Assembly: GCF_000400465.1 (NCBI RefSeq) | Contig: NW_008806286.1 | Location: 143,865 to 175,864 of the forward strand | Source of the DNA: Wallemia ichthyophaga EXF-994 | Taxonomy: Eukaryota; Fungi; Basidiomycota | Direction of reading: 5' to 3' | Length of the DNA stretch: 32,000 nucleotides | Made by a program: the position numbers and the translations under genes | In this document: piece by piece, positions 19,148-29,677 of the stretch | Position numbering within the stretch: the stretch's first letter is position 1 | Layout: each line of letters begins with the position of its first letter | The notes under the pieces: generated by a model | What the model was told of the DNA's origin: nothing | What the model saw: the letters and a program-made list of their open reading frames with translations, nothing else | Databases searched by the model: none

Positions 19148-19963
19148 TCAAAGGCGTACAGCAATAGCCAAACCGTCATGACCTTTACTTGAACATATTT
19201 GAATGTTGGTAGCCTCGATCAAGCCTTGGTCTTGGAGCTGCTGGAGGGCGGGATAGACAGCTCTAATGCCGATGCCGTAAGGATCCTGTGTATGTTCATC
19301 GAGGAGGATATTGTAGTTGCGAACAGTATTATCTACGTATATGACAGCTCCTGGGCGAGTCAGATCGATAGCCTTGCGGAGATATGCCGCGCTGTTCATC
19401 TTATCAGCATCTATAAACACCATATCGAAAGCACCCTGAAGCGTGTCGAGCGTTTCGAGTGCAGCGCCATGTTTTACTTCCACTCTGCAGCTTGGATTGG
19501 CGTACGCGATGTTCTCTCGCGAAAGCTGTGCAAATTTTTCATTTGACTCGAGCGAGATGAGCTCACCGTCGGCAGGAAGAGCCTTTGAGAGCCTATAGGA
19601 GTGCAATAGAGCATCCATTAGCTTGTGCGCTTCCCTCAATCTACAAACACCCCACTCACCAAATACTAGAATACCCGGCTAGGGTGCCTATTTCAAGCAC
19701 CCTCTTTGCCCTCATCATCTTAGCCTGTATCATGAGAAACTTGCCTTGGATGGCGCTGACGCTGATATCGGGAAGGCCATTATTGGCGGCGTTTTGCATG
19801 CACTTGTCGAGCGCTGCGTCTGGTTTGATGATGTGCTGTTCGGAGAAGTTGTCTACTTGGGTAAAAGCTTCAGTCTGGGGGGAATGTTGGGGAGTAGGTG
19901 TGTGGTGAGTCTGTGTCGAGACCAAATTACTGAAACACCCACTGGAATCATTGAAAGTGACAT
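19148..19963 (-). CDS. SAM-dependent O-methyltransferase (Methyltransf_3 type), paralog B (introns 19875-19942, 19593-19659)
   Basis: VSAIQGKF, RVLEIGTLAGYSSIWLSKAL, GAALETL, FDMVFIDADK, GAVIYVDN. Start at ATG 19963 with a 21-nt first exon; an alternative start at 20027 is discussed in findings. Confidence 0.9.
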
Positions 19964-20239
19964 GTTTATTGTCGCTGATTGAGAACAAGGATACCACGGC
20001 CAATATTCTAAAAGTCTTGGATACCATTCGACCTACTCCAAGTCATCACAATCCTGATTCAGAAGCGAGTGAAATTTTTAAATCCAACGATTCCAACGAC
20101 CCAAAAAACACACGATTTCTCTCACATGTATGAAAACAAATGGATAATATATCAGTATCAACTTTTCTCCACTATTAGTCATCATTCCTTGGAGTCATTC
20201 CAAAGTTTGGGCAAGGGTATTTGAAGATTTTTGAGTGAA

Positions 20240-21255
20240 CTACACACTCCAAAGCATACCCTTCCTGTCATAAAAACTGGCTGACATAATCAGTCCCTCT
20301 TTATTCCAATCGACACCATAAGCGAGGTTGTGATGTGTGTTGGTGTGCACGATAGCACTTGAGTGGAGATCCACAACATCGAATCCGCCATACATATTCG
20401 CCATGACTAGTTTGCTGTCATCAGTTTCATGATATTTGATACGCCAAATACCTCCACTCGTCTTGATACTACTGGTGGGTGTCTTGAGATTCCGTTTGTC
20501 GAAAATGCGCAACGTCTCATCGTAAGAGCCCACAGCGAGCTCATTTTGATTGTGTGGGGAGTTAGAGATGGTAGTTACGCCGCCATCGAATCTAATAAGA
20601 GTATAAGAGAGGATGATGCAGCTATATTGACAGAGACGTACTTCTTATTAGACGATACGGGTGCGTTTAATCCAACCCTAAGATCCCAAGCCTTGAAGAC
20701 ACAATCATCGGCACCTGTATAGAGGATATGGTTTGGAGAATAGTGATCCCACGCGGCAATCCACGTTTCGTAATCGTGTGCCTGCCAATCATGCACCAGC
20801 TGCTGTGTGGAAGTGTTTACGCTGATTGCACGACCATCTGACATGGAAACAGCGATCTGTGGATCAGTATCACAGCGCAAATTCGACCAATCGAGAGATA
20901 ATGCTAAGGAGGAGGAGTGCGGAGAGCAATCGATGGTGTATAGATTAGAAAGAGAACTTTCAGAGAATTTGTCGACAGATAGCACTCCTTCTGCATCAAC
21001 AAGACCTAGAAGCTGTTTCATCCACTTTATATCTAGCGTGCCTGGTGTTTGACGGCTATCCAAGTAATTAAATGTACGCTGAGTACAGTCATACACTAAA
21101 CACTGCCCTTTGCGCTGCTGATGGCTAATTTTCCCGTCTTTGTCGGTCTGTGTATCAACGAGCTCATAAGTCCCAACAGCGTAGACGTCGAGTAAGTCAT
21201 TGTATTCAACAGCACATGCTGTGTTTTGAAAATTAATTTCTGCGTGTGTTCGCAT
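20240..21255 (-). CDS. DPH7: Diphthine methyltransferase Dph7/Rrt2 (WD40; intron 20592-20641)
   Basis: TAC.VE, AVGTYEL, GTLDIKW, ALSLDWS, AHDYETWIAAWD, LYTGADD...WDLR, FDGGVT.I, LAVGSYDE, GGIWRIKY, LAYGVDW, SFYD. Confidence 0.92.
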
Positions 21256-21282
21256 CTTATTCTTGTACGCTGAACAAGTGAA

Positions 21283-23325
21283 ATGGATCCAATTAAGCAG
21301 GAATTGCTGAAATCTGGGAAAATCGACACAGTAAATTTGTGTACAGTGTTTTAATTAGATTAAGTCTAAGCAGCCACCTCAGTCTCGTATTCAGCACGTA
21401 CCGGAGCAGAGACTGAGCCACTTCAACTCAGGCTCAAATTACAAGTCAGCAAGGGATAAGCAGAAGGAGGCAGACGAGCAACGAAGACTTGAAGAGGATA
21501 CACAGACGCAGATGGCGTACAAAGAGTATTTGGACGCCTTTGATGACGTCAGGCAGTCTTCTTTTGTTAAATCTGGAAATGGCAGAGAATGTGGGTGTGG
21601 GGATTCTGTGTGATTGTGGCTTACGTTTCGGCAAGCTTATTCTCACCAACCCAAATCACACCCAGTTGAACTCAATTCTCAGGGGAAAATTAAAGGCAAG
21701 ACGCAAATGGACAGCTTTTTACAGGAGTTGAAGAGAGAACAGACTGGAAGAGGCAGCAGAAGTGATCCTGACTTTCATAGCGATGCAGATCCTCACTCTA
21801 CCAACCTCTACGTCGCTAACCTTCCAACTTGGATCGATGAACGAATTTTTGGTGAATACTTTGCTCAATTTGGTGCTATAGCTTCTGTGTGTGGCTTATG
21901 AAATTGGAAATACACCCCTGATTACCCAATCCAGGTCAAAATACTTTGGCCGCGACCAGAAGATCAGCATAAGCTGAAGCAACCTGGATACGCGGGATTT
22001 ATTAGCTTCATGACACGCCATGATGCTGAAACAGCTTTGAAACAGCTAGATGGCTCAGATTGGCAGGGTCATATGTTAAAAGTGGGTTTTGCATTGTTTG
22101 TACGTAGATCAAACCTCAAACTACAGATCAGGTTGATTGGGGAAAACGCGTGAGAATACCTTCAAGACCACTATACGAGAGTACTGCCAAACGTCCCGCT
22201 CCATCACGATCAAGATCGCCAAGCAGCTTCGATCAGCGTGAAAGTAAGCGCAGTCGTGTTGAAGAAGAGGCGCCTGGTGTTGACGGAAAGACTCTCAATT
22301 TCTTGCTTAGCGTTGTGTCATATGCCAAGTCACACGACAAAGGACCTTCAGCCTGCTTGGAAGAGCTGAAATGGCTCAGTGAAGAGTATGCTTTCTTGAA
22401 TAACGACAACGTAGGTTGTGTGTCATTAATTGATAACTTTAACACTTAATTTAAGGATACAAAATCCAGATTCGTGCTCAACCAACTAGATAACGATATA
22501 CCATTCGACGATAGCAAGCCAACTGCTGATTCGGAAAACGATCTCAGCGAACAAGAGCAAAGTGAGCATGAATCAATACAGAAACAGAAGCAAAATATTC
22601 TAGGTGGAGTCGCCAAGAAGAAATTGGAAAGAATGCTACGCCAAATCACACCGAAGCGCTCGTCTATAGGTAAGGTGATGGCATTTGCAATAGACCATTC
22701 AGAAGCCTACGAGGGTGTAGTGGGTGTAGTCATCAAGTCGCTCCTCAACGTGTCTACACCTGTTCCACGAAAGATTGCACGACTACATCTAGTTTCTGAC
22801 ATACTCGCCAATAGTGCGGTTAGCATTTCCGGTGCTTGGAAGTATAGGGATGAGATACAGCGGCAATTGCCCAAGGTATTCGATCATCTGGGACTCGTTA
22901 GATCCACCTTCCCAAGCAAATTGAGTCAGAATTTCTTCAAGGAGCGCATTGAAGTTGTTTTAACAGTGTGGGCCGAATTATTTATCTTCCCGCAGAATAT
23001 CCTCGATGATTATCTGATCAGATTGGAGGGAGTGGGCAGAAAACGTTTGGAATTGGATCGTAGCAGCACGCTAGTCAGTCGCAGCCAGAATCACAGCGAT
23101 AGCGCATCTAGCCATCCAATTACACCAGTCGTGGAGGAAGTGGAGAAACCAACTGGATTTAAGCCATTTATACAAGGAGCGGAGGAAGTAGAAGAGGATA
23201 TCGACGGTGCACCAATCGACGATATCGATGGTGAGCCTATGGAGGGAGATGGAGAGGACATTGACGGGGAGCCAATGGAGGACATTAATATTGACGGGCA
23301 ATCATTGCACACATATCAAGAATAA
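21283..23325 (+). CDS. U2SURP: U2 snRNP-associated SURP-motif protein (SR140/U2SURP homolog); introns 21331-21373, 21591-21665, 21887-21934, 22082-22131, 22411-22455
   Basis: AYKEYLDAFD...FVK, MDSFLQELKREQ, RRM (STNLYVANLP...FG.IASVKILWPR...GF.SF..R.DAE...DWGK), CID (KIARLHLVSDILANS...AWKYR), and C-terminal DIDG.P repeats. Confidence 0.88.
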
Positions 23326-23441
23326 CTAAATTGAATCATTTCCTTGTTTATAATACATTAACTTTCCATCTGCAATATCGTCAGCTCATGTTTCGTGTCT
23401 TGACCAAACCAAAATCCCAAAGAGCACTTGTACTTGTATTA

Positions 23442-23521
23442 TCAGAAAGCGATTGAATACATCGTTTTCCTCAAGAAAGATTAAGACTTAGCATGGAATA
23501 TAAATGTATGTGTATCATCAT
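23442..23521 (-). ncRNA. SNR53: Box C/D snoRNA, snR53-like (guide for 18S Am796, yeast numbering)
   Basis: ATGATGA (23521-23515) to CTGA (23445-23442), 80 nt. The 13-nt guide TATTCCATGCTAA (23500-23488) is complementary to conserved 18S UUAGCAUGGAAUA. With D' = CTTA, the -5 rule hits the A of UUAGC. C'-like ACGATGT; 3' end CGCTTTCTGA as I recall for yeast snR53. Confidence 0.87.
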
Positions 23522-23642
23522 ATCAAAAAATTTGTGCTCTTTTTTGCGACTTGGTGAGGCGTAAAACTCACAATCTGGATAATTGTTAGTAAATATATTA
23601 TATGCCACAAGAGCAAGGCCATTTAACAGCTTTTGATTCATT

Positions 23643-23720
23643 TCAGAAGTGCTGAGTTTGGAAGTGCGTGGTCAATCAGTCATCTATAGATCAGACTGGG
23701 GCGACAACAATGATCATCAT
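23643..23720 (-). ncRNA. SNR67: Box C/D snoRNA, snR67/SNORD31-like (guide for the LSU P-loop Gm2619 yeast = Gm2251 E. coli)
   Basis: ATGATGA (23720-23714), D' CTGA (23694-23691), C'-like TAGATGA, D CTGA (23646-23643), 78 nt, flanking ATTCA/TGAAT stem. Guide GTCGCCCCAGT pairs with LSU RCUGGGGCGGC; the -5 rule selects the second G of CUGGGGC. Confidence 0.9.
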
Positions 23721-23809
23721 TGAATTTGTATTGTGTACGATTGGCCTTACTCTTTTACCAAATTTACTCACTTTTGATTTCAATGTGAGGAAGAAGAAGA
23801 TTTACTATG

Positions 23810-23817
23810 CGTGACTG
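23810..23817 (-). promoter_or_regulatory. Homol-D-like box (CAGTCACG) upstream of the snoRNA host gene
   Basis: 7/8 match to CAGTCACA, about 40 nt upstream of the first donor and followed by a pyrimidine-rich tract (TCTTCTTCTTCCTC). Function is inferred. Confidence 0.4.
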
Positions 23818-23903
23818 ATATACACATCTGTTAACGCACATTAACGACACTTTAACGTGAAGTTTTTCACTCTTATACAAGTACACGTATTGTTACACAA
23901 GCT

Positions 23904-24913
23904 TTAGTGGTATTCGATGGTGTTGTATACTTTGCTAGCTCTGTAGCCTGTGGAGGGTGTGAGCAATCTCGGTATCACACAATCACCGAGAACGACCATC
24001 ACCCACCAAATGCTTTAACTCTGCTAGCATCGAATCTAGATCCATGTGAGTTGAGAAATCTTATCGCGAGATACCTTGTCGCCCTTCCTGGCTCTAAATC
24101 GATAGTCAGTTTTTGTGGTGGTGCGAATGCAACGGATTCAATGGGTTGAGCGTAGCTATTAAAGTATGCACATGGTGTTAGGTTAGTGGGGAATGGTAAA
24201 TCTGGAGGAGAAGGAGATTGAGGTGGAGAAATAAATTGATCCCTTTTTACTCTCTTTTGAGGTCTTGGTGAGGTGGAAGGGTCTTCTAAAAGTCTGGTAT
24301 GAGATTGACGTGGTGAAGAATGATAGTTTATTGGAGCGAATGAAGAAGAATGTGGTGGTGGTGTGGATGAAAATTTTTGATCAATACCCGGACCTAAAGG
24401 TTGCTTGAGTTGAGAACTATATCGTTCTAATAGGGGTAAAGATTGGCTGTGATAGACTGATAAATCGTCCAAAGAAATGTGATCTAAACTTGCGAAAATC
24501 AAGCCATCAGATTTATACGGAACGACTAATTCAAGTTTAGTGAGTAAGAAGCTGTCAGGAGGCTTATTATCGTTTAAAGTCATGATTATTGAATTTGGAG
24601 GATCAACGTCAAAGCGTATACGTATGTCTGGGAACAAAGGACCTTCACCATCGATAAAAACGCCTTGATTGTTATCAAGTACGTGTAAAGGAAGCTTTTC
24701 AATGTCTTGATGATTATCATTATAATCGTTATTATCATTATTTATCCTTCTCATTTGCCTAATTGATCTTCTCCTTTGTACAGCAGCTTCACCAGTTGCT
24801 AACAAATCTGAAGCAGCGGATCTCCATCCAGGTCCTAAAGGGGCAGAAGGTTGTCCATTTATTGTATCGCTTCTTCTGTATCTTCCTTGTATTGTTGAAA
24901 TGCTGCGTACCAT
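23904..24913 (-). CDS. Hypothetical protein (~317 aa; probable intron 23948-24006)
   Basis: 304-codon ORF from ATG 24913. A GTGGGT...GCTCAC...CAG intron extends it to FGYRASKVYNTIEYH-stop. No family recognised. Confidence 0.7.
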
Positions 24914-25104
24914 CCTCGTCGTTGGTGGGTAAAAGGGGTTTCTAGTCTACTTATAATTTATTTTATTTATTATGATTCAATTTTCATCTATTCACGACCA
25001 CGGTAATTTCAGGAATTTAGTTATCATCGGGTATCCGAAATTCACCGAGGATCCGCTGATAAAGGTCTCTTTCCCGGGTATTCACACTTCAGCAGTAAAC
25101 AACG

Positions 25105-26790
25105 ATGACCGTAGAAATAAAGAGTGAGTTTGAGTACTTCCACATAAGCCATTCTAATAAACAACAGACGACGTTTCCCGTGAGCTAATTTTCATTGAAA
25201 ACAATCAACTTCTCACGCTGCAATTTAGCACAGCACAAGGCAATTCTTAATGAAGGTGCTTTACAATTCCTTACAAAGTTACACCGTACTTTCAACAACA
25301 CTAGAAAGCAACTCCTTGACACACGTAAACAACGTCAAACTAACCTCGATAACGGTAAAATTCATCTTGACTTTTTACCTGAAACAGAGCACATACGTCA
25401 AAATAAAGCTTGGATCTGTGCACCACCTGCGCCTGGTTTAAAGGATCGTAGAGTTGAAATCACTGGTCCAACTGAGCGTAAAATGGTTATAAATGCTTTA
25501 AATTCAGGCTGCAAGACTTTCATGGCTGACTTTGAAGACTCAAATTCACCAACTTGGTTTAACATGATCGATGGCCAACTCAACCTTCATGACGCAATTC
25601 GTAAACAGATTGATTTCACCGATAACAAATCTGGAAAATCTTACAAGTTATCCCCAAATCCTGCTGTGTTGATAGTAAGACCACGCGGATGGCACCTTGA
25701 TGAAACCAGAATTCTAATTGACGGTGAACCTGTCTCAGGTGGTTTGTTCGACTTTGCAATGTACTTTTATCACAACGCTAAGGAGTACATTAATAGAGGT
25801 TACGGCCCTTATTTCTACCTCCCAAAATTGGAATCTCACCTTGAAGCTAGGCTTTGGAATGATATTTTCAACTTTGCTCAAGATAGTATTGATATTCCAA
25901 GAGGTACTATCAGAGCAACTGTCCTCATTGAAACAATCTACGCTGTCTTTGAAATGGATGAGATCTTATACGAATTAAGAAATCACTCTTCCGGCTTGAA
26001 TTGCGGTAGATGGGATTACATATTCTCTTTCATCAAAGCTCAACGCGCCAAAAAATCTTGTGTTTTACCAAACAGATCAGACGTAACAATGACAGTTCCA
26101 TTCATGGATGCTTATGTCAGATTACTCATTCAAACTTGTCATGGTCGTCAAGTTGCTGCAATGGGTGGTATGTCAGCTCAAATTCCAATAAAGAATGATG
26201 AGAAAGCAAATGATGCGGCTATGACTAAGGTTAAGAACGATAAAGCTAGAGAAGTTAATGCTGGTCATGATGGTACTTGGGTTGCACATCCCGCGTTAGT
26301 TAAGATTGCTTTGGATATCTTCAATGATAAGATGGTTGGACCAAATCAATATCACGTACGTCGTGAGGAAGTTAAGGTTAATGGAGGTGATCTATTAAAT
26401 ACTCAAGTACCTGGTGATATTAGTGAAAGTGGAGTACATGAGAATGCATCAGCAGGATTAGCATATTGTTCATCTTGGATTGAAGGCAATGGATGTGTAC
26501 CAATCAATAATCTAATGGAGGATGCTGCAACTGCTGAAATAGCAAGAGTTCAATTATGGTCATGGGTAAAGTACGCAGCCAAGACAAGCTCAGGTAAAGT
26601 GATTAATGCGAGTTACGTTGATCAAGTGCTTAAAGAGGAAGGAAAGAAGGTTAAAGGGGTAAAGGAAAGCAGCATTAACAAGGCAATTGAGTATTTGAAT
26701 GATCAAATCAAGTCAAATTGGCCATCAGACTTCTTAACTTCAGATTTATTAAATATCCTCGAATCTGGACAGAAGAAGGCGTCTCTTTGA
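25105..26790 (+). CDS. MLS1: Malate synthase A (exons 25105-25123, 25168-25179, 25229-26790)
   Basis: [96 protein letters not shown]. Confidence 0.97.
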
Positions 26791-26897
26791 GTTATTTGTT
26801 TGAGACATAGTGTATGTATTGTTAGTTATGATAAGATTATTTGTATTTTCTGATGAAATTTTTGAAATATTCTTGATAACAGACTACCAACGACAAG

Positions 26898-29677
26898 ATG
26901 AAGGGGAAAAAGGATTTCAAGGAGAAGAAAGGAAATAAAAAAACACAGCCAAAGGAAATTACAAAAAAATATAAAAAGGGAGATGAATTGAATGTATTTG
27001 AATTGTCAAATGATAAAGAAGATTCATCTAGACGTTCAAATCTAACAACGAAACTTGATAAGGATGAAGATTATGATCAGCGTGGATTAGATAATGACAG
27101 TGATGATGATAAGCTTAGGGATATAAAAATTGATCATTTAAAGGACACCGTCGTTAACGATAGCGATGATGAAGAAATTGATAGTGATGATGCTTTTGAA
27201 GGCAGTGATGATGAAAAGTACGCAGATTGGCATTTTACTGGCTCAAAACATCCAAATCGGTTGGATGATGGTGTCGATGGTGTCGATGGTGTCGACGAGG
27301 ACGATGAGGATGATGAGGAAATGGTCGATCTTGATACTATGCTTAACGATGATAATCAACTAGATCAAGATATCACAAAAGAAGATGTCGATGATAGCGA
27401 TGTTGAGTTTGAACAAGATGAACAAGGCGATTCAACCAAACTAACGCAACTCGTTGACTCATTAGATCCTTCTTCTAAGAAATCTACCACTAATGACTCT
27501 CCTACTTCCAAAGATGGCTTTGTCGCGGGTAAAAATTCAGAATTTAGAGTACCTACGGATGGTTAGTAATAGTTATATTCAAAATTCATCAACACTAACA
27601 ACTCACAGGTCCAGTTTCTTTGGATTCTCTTCTCGCTCCACTACCAACCAACATCGCTTCAACCATTAATCACCAAGTTAAACCTTTGAAACCTTCAGAA
27701 TCAAAAACTGCAAAGAGAGGCGCCCTCGCTGCTCCTTTAGCAACTTTTTACAAAGAACGTGCTGATCGTCAAGCCGGTCAAAAAGTTGTCAAAGACGATA
27801 TAAAGCAATGGGATGCATCTATGAAAGCTTTAGAGAACTCAAATACCCTTTCCTTTCCTCTACAAGGACCAGGTCAAGGTGGTGTAGTAGATGGTTCACA
27901 CTCAGGTAAAGATTTGGTTAGTGAATTTAAACCAGCCAATCCACTTGAATCATCAGTTGACCATCTCCTCAAATCTAACAACTTGTCCACACAAGTTAAT
28001 CCTTCTGATAGTCTCCCTCAGCAGGAACAATCAAAGTTATCTCAAGAACAAACTAAAGCTAAATTTCAAGCCTTGCGTCAGCAAAGACAACTCATGTACG
28101 AATCTGAGAAGAAAGCTGCAAGGATGAATAAGATCAAGAGCAAAACTTATAGAAGATTAAGGAGAAAGGAGAAGGAAGCTAACAAGCGTAAAGCTGCTGA
28201 AGCTGGTGTGCTTGATTCTGATGAAGAGAGAATGGGTGCGGAGAGAAATCGTGCACTTGAAAGAGCAACTCTCAGACACAAAGGTGGAAACAGCAAATGG
28301 GCGAAAGAGATGAAAGATCGTAGTGATGGTGACAAAGATACTCTCAATGAATTACATAGAATGGAAGAATTAGGTCAGAGAATTAGAGGCGAAAAGTTTG
28401 ACAATGACAATGATGATGATGAAAGTGATGATAGTATTGGTGATAATGACGACGATGACGCTGTTAAGCTCGCTGCACTCAACAAAATGAGATCCTTACA
28501 GCATAATGGTGATAATAGCGTCGAAGACAACTTTAAGGGTATTGCCGGTATGAAGTTCATGAGAGATGCTCAAGCTCGCGAAAACAAAGCTATGGAAGAT
28601 GAAGCTGAAGATTTTGCCAAAGAGATGAGAGGAGAAAAAGAAGAATCTGATGATAAGCTTAATATTGGTGGTAATCCTGGTAGATTCGTCGTTGGACCTG
28701 GAAAGAAAGCAAAGATTAGCGTCGATGACTCAGTGGAAGATAATGAGCCCACGTCTACAACGTCGTCGCACACCTTAGGTCGTGAAAAAGATAGTGATAC
28801 CAACCCAGTATCATTCGATAAGTTTAAAGAACAGTACGAGGATGTAAACAATGTCAGTGATGAAGATGAGAGCAATCCTTGGCTGAAAGGTGACAATGAA
28901 GGCACAAAGAGGGCTAAGAAGAAGAATATTGCAACGCTATCCAAGGACTCAAAGAAAGCTGACAAGAGTCAGGCTGAATTTAAAAAGCGCAAGAGAGCTA
29001 ATCAAGGCGGTAACGATGAAGAGGAGGTAGACATTGATCTTAATGCTACTATAACCAAAGAAGCGAAGAACAACAAAACAAACAAACCAAACAACCCAAA
29101 AAGCACTTCAAAGAAGCAAAAGAAGGGTAAAAAGAATGACAATGCCCAGGATGGGTTTGCATCAGAGTCAGACAGCGATGATGATATGGCTGGTGGTGGT
29201 GTACAAGCGTTCAAGCAGCGTGATTTGGTTGCCGAAGCATTTGCAGCTGATGATGTTGTAAAGGACTTTGAAGAAGAGAAGAAAATGGAAATTGAGGCAG
29301 AAGGACCACAACAAGTGGACACATCGCTTCCTGGATGGGGTAGCTGGTCTGGTAAGGGAGTGAAGAAGAACAAGGCAGCAGAAGAGAAGAAGCGTGCACG
29401 ATTCCTCAAGACAACGGAAGGTGTAGACGCAGATAAGAGAAAGGACGCGAACAAGACGAATGTAATAATAAGCGAGAAGACAGAGAAGAGGCCAATGAAT
29501 AAGTACTCAGTGAAGGATCTACCATATCCATTTACAAGCAGATCACAATACGAGTCAGCCATGTCTAATGCGATTGGACAAGAGTTCAACACGACGAGCG
29601 CACACAAGCGTGAAATAGCGCCAAAGATACAAACGAAGCCTGGACAAGTAATAAACCCAATTGTACGCAGATATTAG
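26898..29677 (+). CDS. UTP14: U3 snoRNP/SSU processome protein Utp14 (intron 27562-27608)
   Basis: Acidic N-terminus, ERADRQAG...W, KAARMNKIKSKTYRR, RALERATLRHK..SKWAK, MKFM, QRDLVAEAFA.DDV..DFEEEK, LPGWGSWSGKG, LPYPFTS..QYE, TKPG.VI.PI. Confidence 0.95.

Follow-up and report, generated by a model that had tools for sequence, protein, structure and literature searches.

How could splicing release two small nucleolar RNAs (snoRNAs) from one transcript when the exon between their introns is only 3 nucleotides (nt) long? The question is raised by a locus on the minus strand of a 32,000-nt stretch of Wallemia ichthyophaga EXF-994 DNA (contig NW_008806286.1; hereafter the window, 64 kb when both strands are counted), where an earlier note had proposed a non-coding host gene carrying two intron-encoded box C/D snoRNAs, snR67 and then snR53. 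Splice and box motifs were located by script and the minus strand was also read directly; each coordinate of the earlier note was reproduced to the base. We put at about three in four the probability that the locus is a minimal UHG-like non-coding host, predicted to be spliced twice with one snoRNA per intron and to occupy ~0.5 kb between two protein-coding genes.

Layout of the locus and its conservation

Read 5' to 3' along the minus strand, to which feature coordinates refer unless stated otherwise, intron 1 (197 nt, 23771..23575) opens with the 5' splice site (5'SS1) GTGAGT at 23771-23766 and closes with a TACTAAC branch site at 23591-23585 and the 3' splice site (3'SS1) CAG at 23577-23575. 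The internal micro-exon, ATT, occupies 23574-23572 between 3'SS1 and the next donor, and intron 2 (202 nt, 23571..23370) then runs from a second GTGAGT (5'SS2, 23571-23566) through the branch motif GCTGAC (23385-23380) to CAG (3'SS2, 23372-23370). Each intron contains one box C/D snoRNA together with a canonical 5'SS, branch site and 3'SS, all six signals being present. GTRAGT alone occurs in the window once per ~1.9 kb per strand. The composite of a branch site, YAG and, after at most 10 nt, GTRAGT has a single occurrence in the 64 kb of both strands; block shuffles gave an expectation of 0.26 composites per window and therefore a chance of ~5e-4 that one would land in the 120-nt spacer between the two snoRNAs. 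A regular expression for the full two-intron, two-snoRNA architecture found its sole match in the window at 23771. We read this layout as real and as unannotated, as the earlier note had supposed: in the NCBI assemblies of W. mellicola and W. hederae the interval carries no gene call.

Seven syntenic loci were fetched via the neighbouring proteins: L001, L002, L003, W. mellicola L095 and L096, W. hederae L097, and L099, a distant relative with 30% GC. L096 equals L095 in the one stretch compared and was not analysed separately, so that the six Wallemia loci considered here are the window, L001, L002, L003, L095 and L097, with L099 added for the landmarks. The malate synthase of the window is 84% identical to that of W. 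mellicola (next named matches, 68%) and the gene upstream of the snoRNA unit is 72% identical to its W. hederae and 70% to its W. mellicola counterpart, which places the window in a Wallemia species outside the W. sebi/mellicola group. Landmarks were found by pattern in each sequence; a whole-locus MAFFT alignment misplaced 5'SS1.

All seven loci retain both snoRNAs and both sets of splice signals, in support of the earlier note's reading: a separate 5'SS, branch site and 3'SS go with each snoRNA, and the internal exon stays at 3-8 nt. Intron 1 measures 191-197 nt (234 in L099) and intron 2 187-202 nt (223 in L099), the C box follows the 5'SS by 48-52 nt (58-78 in L099), the D box precedes the branch A by 42-61 nt, and the branch A precedes the 3'SS by 10-15 nt in the six Wallemia loci and by 15 and 23 nt in L099, the latter value belonging to intron 2. 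Among 28 splice-signal positions in the six Wallemia loci there are four variable columns, all within the R or Y of GTRAGT, CTRAC and YAG; in L099 the branch site of intron 1 is CTAAT. Identity among the snoRNAs is 87-88% (snoRNA 2, 88% pairwise among four lineages) versus 54-64% for intron flanks and exons, the exons being 54-56% identical between lineages. The micro-exon itself reads ATT (3 nt) in the window, GATA (4 nt) in L099, TACATA, TAAGCT and TAATCT (6 nt each) in L001, L002 and W. mellicola L095, and TTCTTATA and ACCTTATA (8 nt each) in L003 and W. hederae L097. Its sequence differs between the closest pairs (TAAGCT versus TAATCT, and TTCTTATA versus ACCTTATA), and it appears to behave as a spacer rather than as information.

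The two snoRNAs and their predicted targets

The first snoRNA (snoRNA 1, 23641..23724) comprises a C box ATGATGA (23720-23714), a D' guide TTGTTGTCGCCCCAGT (23710-23695), a D' box CTGA (23694-23691), a C' box AGATGA (23685-23680), a candidate accessory element CCAAACTC (23661-23654) and a D box CTGA (23646-23643), closed by the terminal pairing AUUCA/UGAAU and a 13-bp external stem. At gathering thresholds Rfam returned no matches anywhere in the window. Permissive scans recovered snR67 (RF01177, clan CL00053) at this position with 38.6 bits, E being 4.7e-6 for the region and 2e-4 for the whole window, the sole Rfam match in the 32 kb with E below 0.05, and the same model was called in every ortholog at 30.6-36.6 bits, where the gathering score is 55. 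Because the score is significant but sub-threshold, we name the RNA snR67/U31-type and do not claim Rfam membership for it. Its D' guide TTGTCGCCCCA (UUGUCGCCCCA followed by CUGA) is letter-identical to the Rfam snR67 and snoU31b consensus sequences.

The ribosomal RNA (rRNA) segments used for all duplexes were those of S. cerevisiae and not of a Wallemia record, and the sole check on the 18S was its length of 1800 nt with an A at position 796. With these, the snoRNA 1 guide forms 12 bp (one G-U) with the 25S P-loop, its fifth base ahead of D' facing the second G of GGGG, at a duplex energy of -25.1 kcal/mol, which 3 of 1000 shuffled guides equal. The D' guide is thus predicted to address the P-loop G of the large-subunit rRNA that corresponds to yeast Gm2619, the target of snR67, which E. 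coli and human have in common with yeast (PMC8307265, PMC3511168, PMC5824354), Gm4166 being the human equivalent (PMC5824354, PMC3511168, PMC8307265).

A second possible role of snoRNA 1, as a guide for 25S Um2724 through its D-side element CCAAACUC, was rejected at -9.2 kcal/mol. The Um2724 guide is confined to Saccharomycotina (PMC5824354), so this target does not define the snR67 family outside that group. The same element pairs with 25S GAGUUUGG directly 5' of the D' target, which we read as accessory pairing; the 5 bp that adjoin box D fall short of what a second methylation by this RNA would need. Accessory pairing of this kind was reportedly described by van Nues et al. in 2011. The five bases beside box D (within 23643-23661) read CACUU, or CACCU in relatives, and could pair with 25S GGUG upstream of GAGUUUGG, which would set the fifth base on a G ~14 nt 5' of Gm2619. 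Since a 2-nt mismatch interrupts the helix after 5 bp, this element is probably not a methylation guide.

In the second snoRNA (snoRNA 2, 23439..23526) a C box ATGATGA (23521-23515) is followed by a D' guide ATATTCCATGCTAAGT (23501-23486), a degenerate D' box CTTA (23485-23482), a C' box TGAGGA (23473-23468), a candidate accessory element ATGTATTCA (23462-23454) and a D box CTGA (23445-23442), with a 9-bp external stem around the C and D boxes. With boxes, stems and guides found in each intron, the classification of both RNAs as box C/D snoRNAs held. For snoRNA 2, Rfam gave generic C/D matches only (snosnR61, 22.3 bits; snoR53Y, RF01279, clan CL00080, 14.4 bits, E 2.5); the snR53 covariance models having no significant match, the snR53-type assignment is made from the guide. 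The D' guide AUAUUCCAUGCUAA is complementary to 18S UUAGCAUGGAAUA, which forms part of the published fungal 18S primer sequence TTAGCATGGAATAATRRAATAGGA. It pairs over 13 bp with 18S 794-806, its fifth base before D' lying opposite A796 in UUAGCAUGG, and the duplex energy of -19.0 kcal/mol was equalled by 1 of 1000 shuffles. The UUAGC of the S. cerevisiae 18S starts at 794, so that A796 stands in UUAGC context. Am796 is the target of snR53 (PMC8307265, PMC5824354), and we read the D' guide of snoRNA 2 as a predicted guide to this A, the third base of UUAGCAUGG. The two identities put forward in the earlier note therefore fared differently: snR67 found agreement in its guide and in a significant, if sub-threshold, Rfam match, whereas snR53 found it in the guide to 18S A796 and not in Rfam. 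The order of the two, snR67 ahead of snR53, is that of the yeast cluster, as had been proposed (10.1101/352906).

Across the six Wallemia loci the snoRNA 2 guide, ATATTCCATGCTAA(G)T ahead of CTTA, varies at a single base, a G to A change two bases before D' in L002 and L095, and its core CCATGCTA is also retained in L099. Just 5' of the 18S target stands GAAUA(C/U)AU, to which a further conserved element of snoRNA 2, AUGUAUUCA, is complementary; we read it as an accessory pairing element. The guide core CCAUGCUAA (within 23486-23501, minus strand) is also complementary to the UUAGCAUGG segment of the U6 small nuclear RNA. A dual 18S-A796/U6-A47 role has been proposed for the N. crassa ortholog CD11 (PMC2780460, PMC5824354).

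We then considered how the introns fold around the snoRNAs. The external stems are formed by AAGAGTAAGGCCA and TGGCCTTGCTCTT in intron 1 (23754-23742 / 23621-23609) and by AAAGAGCAC and GTGCTCTTT in intron 2 (23542-23534 / 23427-23419). In minimum-free-energy folds of both introns from five loci, the 5' flank paired with the 3' flank around the snoRNA in 10 of 10 cases, with 16-39 pairs. The 13-bp flank helix of window intron 1 was reached by 3 of 2000 shuffles and the 11-bp helix of the W. mellicola-type intron 2 by 6 and 15 of 2000; fewer than 2% of shuffles reached the helix in four of the ten introns. The arm sequences differ between lineages, the structure being kept and the sequence not. 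Whole-intron folding energy was set aside as evidence of structure, its z-scores being mixed (-2.65 for window intron 1; -5.7 to +0.1 by mononucleotide shuffle for the ortholog introns), and we relied on the flank-to-flank topology instead. The snoRNAs of the window sit 52-61 nt upstream of the branch point. External stems and a position ~50-60 nt upstream of the branch point are said, by Darzacq and Kiss in 2000 and by Hirose and Steitz in 2001, to aid splicing-coupled assembly of the C/D snoRNA-protein particle (snoRNP). Similar snoRNA-branch distances have been reported for N. crassa (PMC2780460).

When metagenomes were scanned for the snR67 guide TTGTCGCCCCAGTCTGA, 91 stretches came up, none with an snR53 guide within 600 nt; the scan added no fungal orthologs. 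Most of the 91 were rejected as chance matches in bacterial-looking DNA or as U31-like snoRNAs lacking Wallemia-type flanks. Some contigs carried tandem arrays of U31-like C/D RNAs (L052, 30-419, four copies ~122 nt apart; L056, 194-1884, three copies), and in others (L012, L023, L039, L083) pairs of different snoRNAs sharing the guide lay 1.6-2.4 kb apart.

The predicted host transcript and the proposed release of its snoRNAs

A promoter-like region with exon 1 (23772..23903) precedes 5'SS1 and holds motifs that are largely conserved: TGTATAA (23879-23873), three CGTTAA repeats 10-11 nt apart, one helical turn (23857-23831), a TATA-like or HomolD-like element TATATCAGTCACG (23822-23810) and a 14-nt pyrimidine tract TCTTCTTCTTCCTC (23800-23787). 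The TATA-like TATATCAG (TATTTATCAG in relatives), ~45-50 nt before 5'SS1, is common with the CT-rich tract to all Wallemia loci, and the CGTTAA trio to the window, L001, L003 and L097, W. mellicola having AT-rich sequence instead. These conserved motifs are likely the host's own promoter, which would give a very short first exon. Exon 3 starts with ATGGAAAGTTAATG... (23326..23369) and runs into the 3' end of a convergent gene; joined exon 1, ATT and exon 3 contain no open reading frame (ORF) longer than a few codons. Within TATATCAGTCACG lies the HomolD core of fission yeast, CAGTCAC, and the relatives share only its TATA-like part and the CT-rich tract; HomolD is used by the promoters of fission-yeast ribosomal-protein and snoRNA genes (PMC4138321). 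A Myb-type factor may bind the CGTTAA trio, which reads TTAACG on the opposite strand, and the 14-nt pyrimidine tract resembles the 5' terminal oligopyrimidine (5'TOP) start of vertebrate snoRNA host genes.

Protein-coding genes adjoin the unit on both sides. The upstream gene (23904..24913, minus strand) consists of a 304-aa ORF, a short intron and a terminal exon: it does not end at 23999, as a mechanical ORF list has it, and a 59-nt intron at 24006-23948 (GTGGGT ... CACAG) leads to a terminal exon at 23947-23904 that encodes ...GYRASKVYNTIEYH and ends in TAA at 23906-23904. The translation of this exon is conserved in L001, L002, L003 and L097. Pfam gave no match to the protein, whose close relatives all come from Wallemia, and a search for cDNA-derived contigs of the gene with the spliced junction found only genomic contigs or unspliced ORF calls. 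On the other side the convergent CID/SR140-like gene ends at 23325 (stop codon 23325-23323, plus strand), and the 578 nt between the two stop codons contain the whole snoRNA host unit. The wider gene order (window 19148-29677) is O-methyltransferase, WD40 protein, RRM/CID (SR140-like) gene, snoRNA host, unknown gene, malate synthase, acidic protein and UTP14, and is common, whole or in part, to every fetched locus as far as the contigs reach, L099 included. Several genes of this neighbourhood have short introns (~50-60 nt) that interrupt mechanical ORFs.

In the model that we propose, RNA polymerase II (Pol II) would transcribe a short non-coding precursor from which two spliceosomal introns of 197 and 202 nt, with one box C/D snoRNA each, would be removed; the lariats would be debranched and exonucleases would trim each of them down to the snoRNP, the assembly of which would be helped by the external stems and by the 52-61 nt between snoRNA and branch point. 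The predicted spliced product is ...ATCAAAA-ATT-ATGGAAAG.... Of the released RNAs, snoRNA 1 would guide 2'-O-methylation of the Gm2619-equivalent G in the 25S P-loop and snoRNA 2 that of 18S Am796, the second element of each pairing with rRNA just 5' of its target. Since 3'SS1 and 5'SS2 are only 3 nt apart, the introns would most likely be removed in succession, by re-splicing, rather than simultaneously, and as both splice sites stay intact whichever intron leaves first, no base donation would be needed.

The earlier note had called this arrangement close to recursive splicing. The functional likeness stands, but the exon is not 0 nt long and nothing is regenerated: strict recursive splicing, with a 0-nt exon and a regenerated 5'SS, was rejected given an exon of 3 nt in the window and 4-8 nt in relatives and a 5'SS2 (GTGAGT) complete throughout. 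The locus would work like recursive splicing without being an instance of it. The micro-exons of L001, L003, L097 and L099 end in TA and, with the first G of the next 5'SS (GTGAGT; GTAAGT in L099), read TAG. As an alternative 3'SS this TAG was rejected, for its use would destroy 5'SS2 and exon 1 would be unable to regenerate it, which leaves the first YAG as the likely acceptor. In L002 (4303-4311) the G of the 3'SS TAG also begins GTAAGC, and overlapping motifs likewise occur in L001 (5499-5506) and L003 (1361-1370). Such overlaps resemble the shared-G 'nested' junctions of Candida, except that exon 1 in Wallemia would not regenerate the donor.

We also entertain, tentatively and at somewhat less than even odds, a stronger version of the model, in which the Wallemia snR67-snR53 host would be a near-minimal ~0.5-kb Pol II unit with an exon 1 of perhaps 10-20 nt from the TOP-like tract, an internal exon kept within 3-8 nt and a functionless product of less than ~100 nt, its snoRNAs being released by obligatory ordered re-splicing.

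Other explanations would leave the snoRNAs in place and change the transcript or its processing. The same introns might belong to the 3' untranslated region (3' UTR) of the upstream protein-coding gene (stop 23906-23904) and not to an independent host. The upstream stop codon lies on the same strand only 132 nt before 5'SS1, all relatives have the genes in this order, and in Candida CPAR2_601470 provides a precedent with two snoRNA-bearing introns in its 3' UTR (PMC5033589). Yet the TATA-like elements, CGTTAA trio and CT-rich tract are conserved between that stop and 5'SS1, as would be expected of a separate promoter; the W. mellicola spacer is 241-243 nt long and still has the TATA-like element ~50 nt before the 5'SS; and introns so deep in a 3' UTR would expose the mRNA to nonsense-mediated decay. 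We regard a 3'-UTR location as unlikely. The absence of an ORF from the joined exons agrees with the non-coding host gene of the earlier note; that this host is independent of the upstream gene is the likelier of the two readings.

It is less probable still that the main event joins 5'SS1 (23771) directly to 3'SS2 (23370), skipping ATT and leaving both snoRNAs in one 402-nt lariat with the internal signals little used. A 3-nt exon is not recognisable by exon definition, its sites may hinder each other sterically, and in N. crassa some exons of snoRNA clusters are skipped (PMC2780460). Seven loci have nevertheless kept the internal branch site, YAG and GTRAGT while their surroundings and the exon diverged, which points to selection on their use, and exonucleolytic trimming alone cannot release both RNAs from one lariat, in keeping with the rule of one snoRNA per intron (PMC2780460); the 1-nt exons of Candida, moreover, are present in the spliced product by RNA-seq (PMC5033589). 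Very improbable, in our view, is that the splice-like motifs are vestigial and that an RNase III-type enzyme and exonucleases cut the snoRNAs from an unspliced dicistronic precursor as in S. cerevisiae, where snR67-snR53 is an intron-less polycistron (10.1101/352906). Long stems do occur in the flanks here, but they enclose each snoRNA and do not form spacer hairpins; the six splice signals fit the consensus in every relative, at 10-15 nt from branch to 3'SS (15 and 23 in L099) and 42-61 nt from D box to branch; and it is only from Saccharomycotina that decay of the signals has been described as a route to intron loss (PMC3596301, PMC5033589).

Several points weigh against a twice-spliced, independent non-coding host for this snoRNA pair. 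Beside the short distance from the upstream stop codon, the 38.6 bits of snoRNA 1 fall short of the Rfam gathering score of 55, and snoRNA 2 has no significant Rfam match and none to RF00338 at E up to 10. The rRNA behind the duplexes is that of S. cerevisiae, several flank helices are not individually significant, and the whole-intron folding z-score of intron 2, 0.10, is unremarkable. We infer the start of transcription, splicing, its order and methylation from the DNA.

Relation to known snoRNA clusters

The novelty implied by the earlier note was overstated, as 1-nt, 0-nt and negative exons in fungal snoRNA clusters have been published with RNA-seq and reverse-transcription PCR (PMC5033589, PMC3596301). 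They are the internal exons of clusters II and III (snR57-55-61 and snR41-70-51) of the Candida CTG clade and Debaryomyces (PMC5033589, PMC3596301), on which work by Mitrovich (2010) is cited in these two papers. Donovan (2016) reported single-base exons and recursive (0 nt) and nested (negative size) splicing in Candida clusters II and III by RNA-seq (PMC5033589), and Luo (2013) 61 cases of exon loss with stepwise splicing of juxtaposed introns (PMC3596301). Neurospora is a further fungus for which intronic snoRNA clusters with such exons have been published, and its clusters likewise provide a precedent for the splicing mechanism (PMC2780460). Like the Candida and Debaryomyces clusters, the Wallemia locus would be a non-coding polycistronic host with one C/D snoRNA per intron, an exon too short for exon definition and stepwise or recursive removal. 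It differs from them in its cluster (snR67-snR53) and in its phylum and class (Basidiomycota, Wallemiomycetes), and from the nested Candida cases in an exon of 3-8 nt with both sites complete, order-independent and without a shared or donated G.

Among filamentous fungi, the UHG-like intronic clusters I-V of N. crassa are conserved with five yeast polycistrons (Liu 2009, PMC2780460) and, as in Wallemia, their C/D snoRNAs lie in the introns of hosts with only short ORFs. N. crassa CD11, the snR53 ortholog, guides 18S Am793 via the same 13-bp D' guide (PMC2780460). CD_26, the N. crassa member of the snR67 family, has switched its target (PMC5824354), whereas the Wallemia RNA keeps what reads as the ancestral Gm2619 guide. 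For W. sebi, a partial loss of the snoRNA set has been reported (PMC5824354). In S. cerevisiae, snR67-snR53 is one of five C/D polycistrons (10.1101/352906) and matches the Wallemia pair in its two families, their order and their D' targets, 25S Gm2619 and 18S Am796 (PMC8307265, 10.1101/352906). The yeast unit differs in having no introns, and yeast snR67 also guides Um2724 via its D box. The yeast unit is processed by Rnt1 and exonucleases.

The vertebrate hosts UHG and GAS5 share with the Wallemia locus non-coding exons, one snoRNA per intron, a fixed snoRNA-branch distance and a pyrimidine tract near the presumed start, but their exons are tens to hundreds of nt long and the TOP-like start of Wallemia is a predicted one. 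The ratchet points of recursive splicing in long introns of Drosophila and vertebrates likewise place a 3'SS before a 5'SS, implying sequential reactions; there the exon is 0 nt and the 5'SS regenerated, whereas in Wallemia 3 nt would remain in the product.

A 3-nt exon between snoRNA introns is thus an expected variant of a published arrangement and no new mechanism. New here are the lineage (Wallemiomycetes), the cluster (snR67-snR53) and a spacer that has been retained at 3-8 nt over the long term. The locus brings to Wallemia genomes two unannotated rRNA-modification guides together with the gene that hosts them, and with it the linkage of snR67 and snR53 and their intronic organisation reach an early-diverging basidiomycete class, which supports the intron-less yeast polycistron being the derived state. 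It also extends the series of vanishing exons, negative, 0 and 1 nt in Saccharomycotina, by a lineage that has held 3-8 nt over long divergence. If obligatory ordered re-splicing is indeed how the snoRNAs are released, the locus would offer a natural and genetically tractable model of an intron-defining spliceosome that faces sites too close for simultaneous occupancy.

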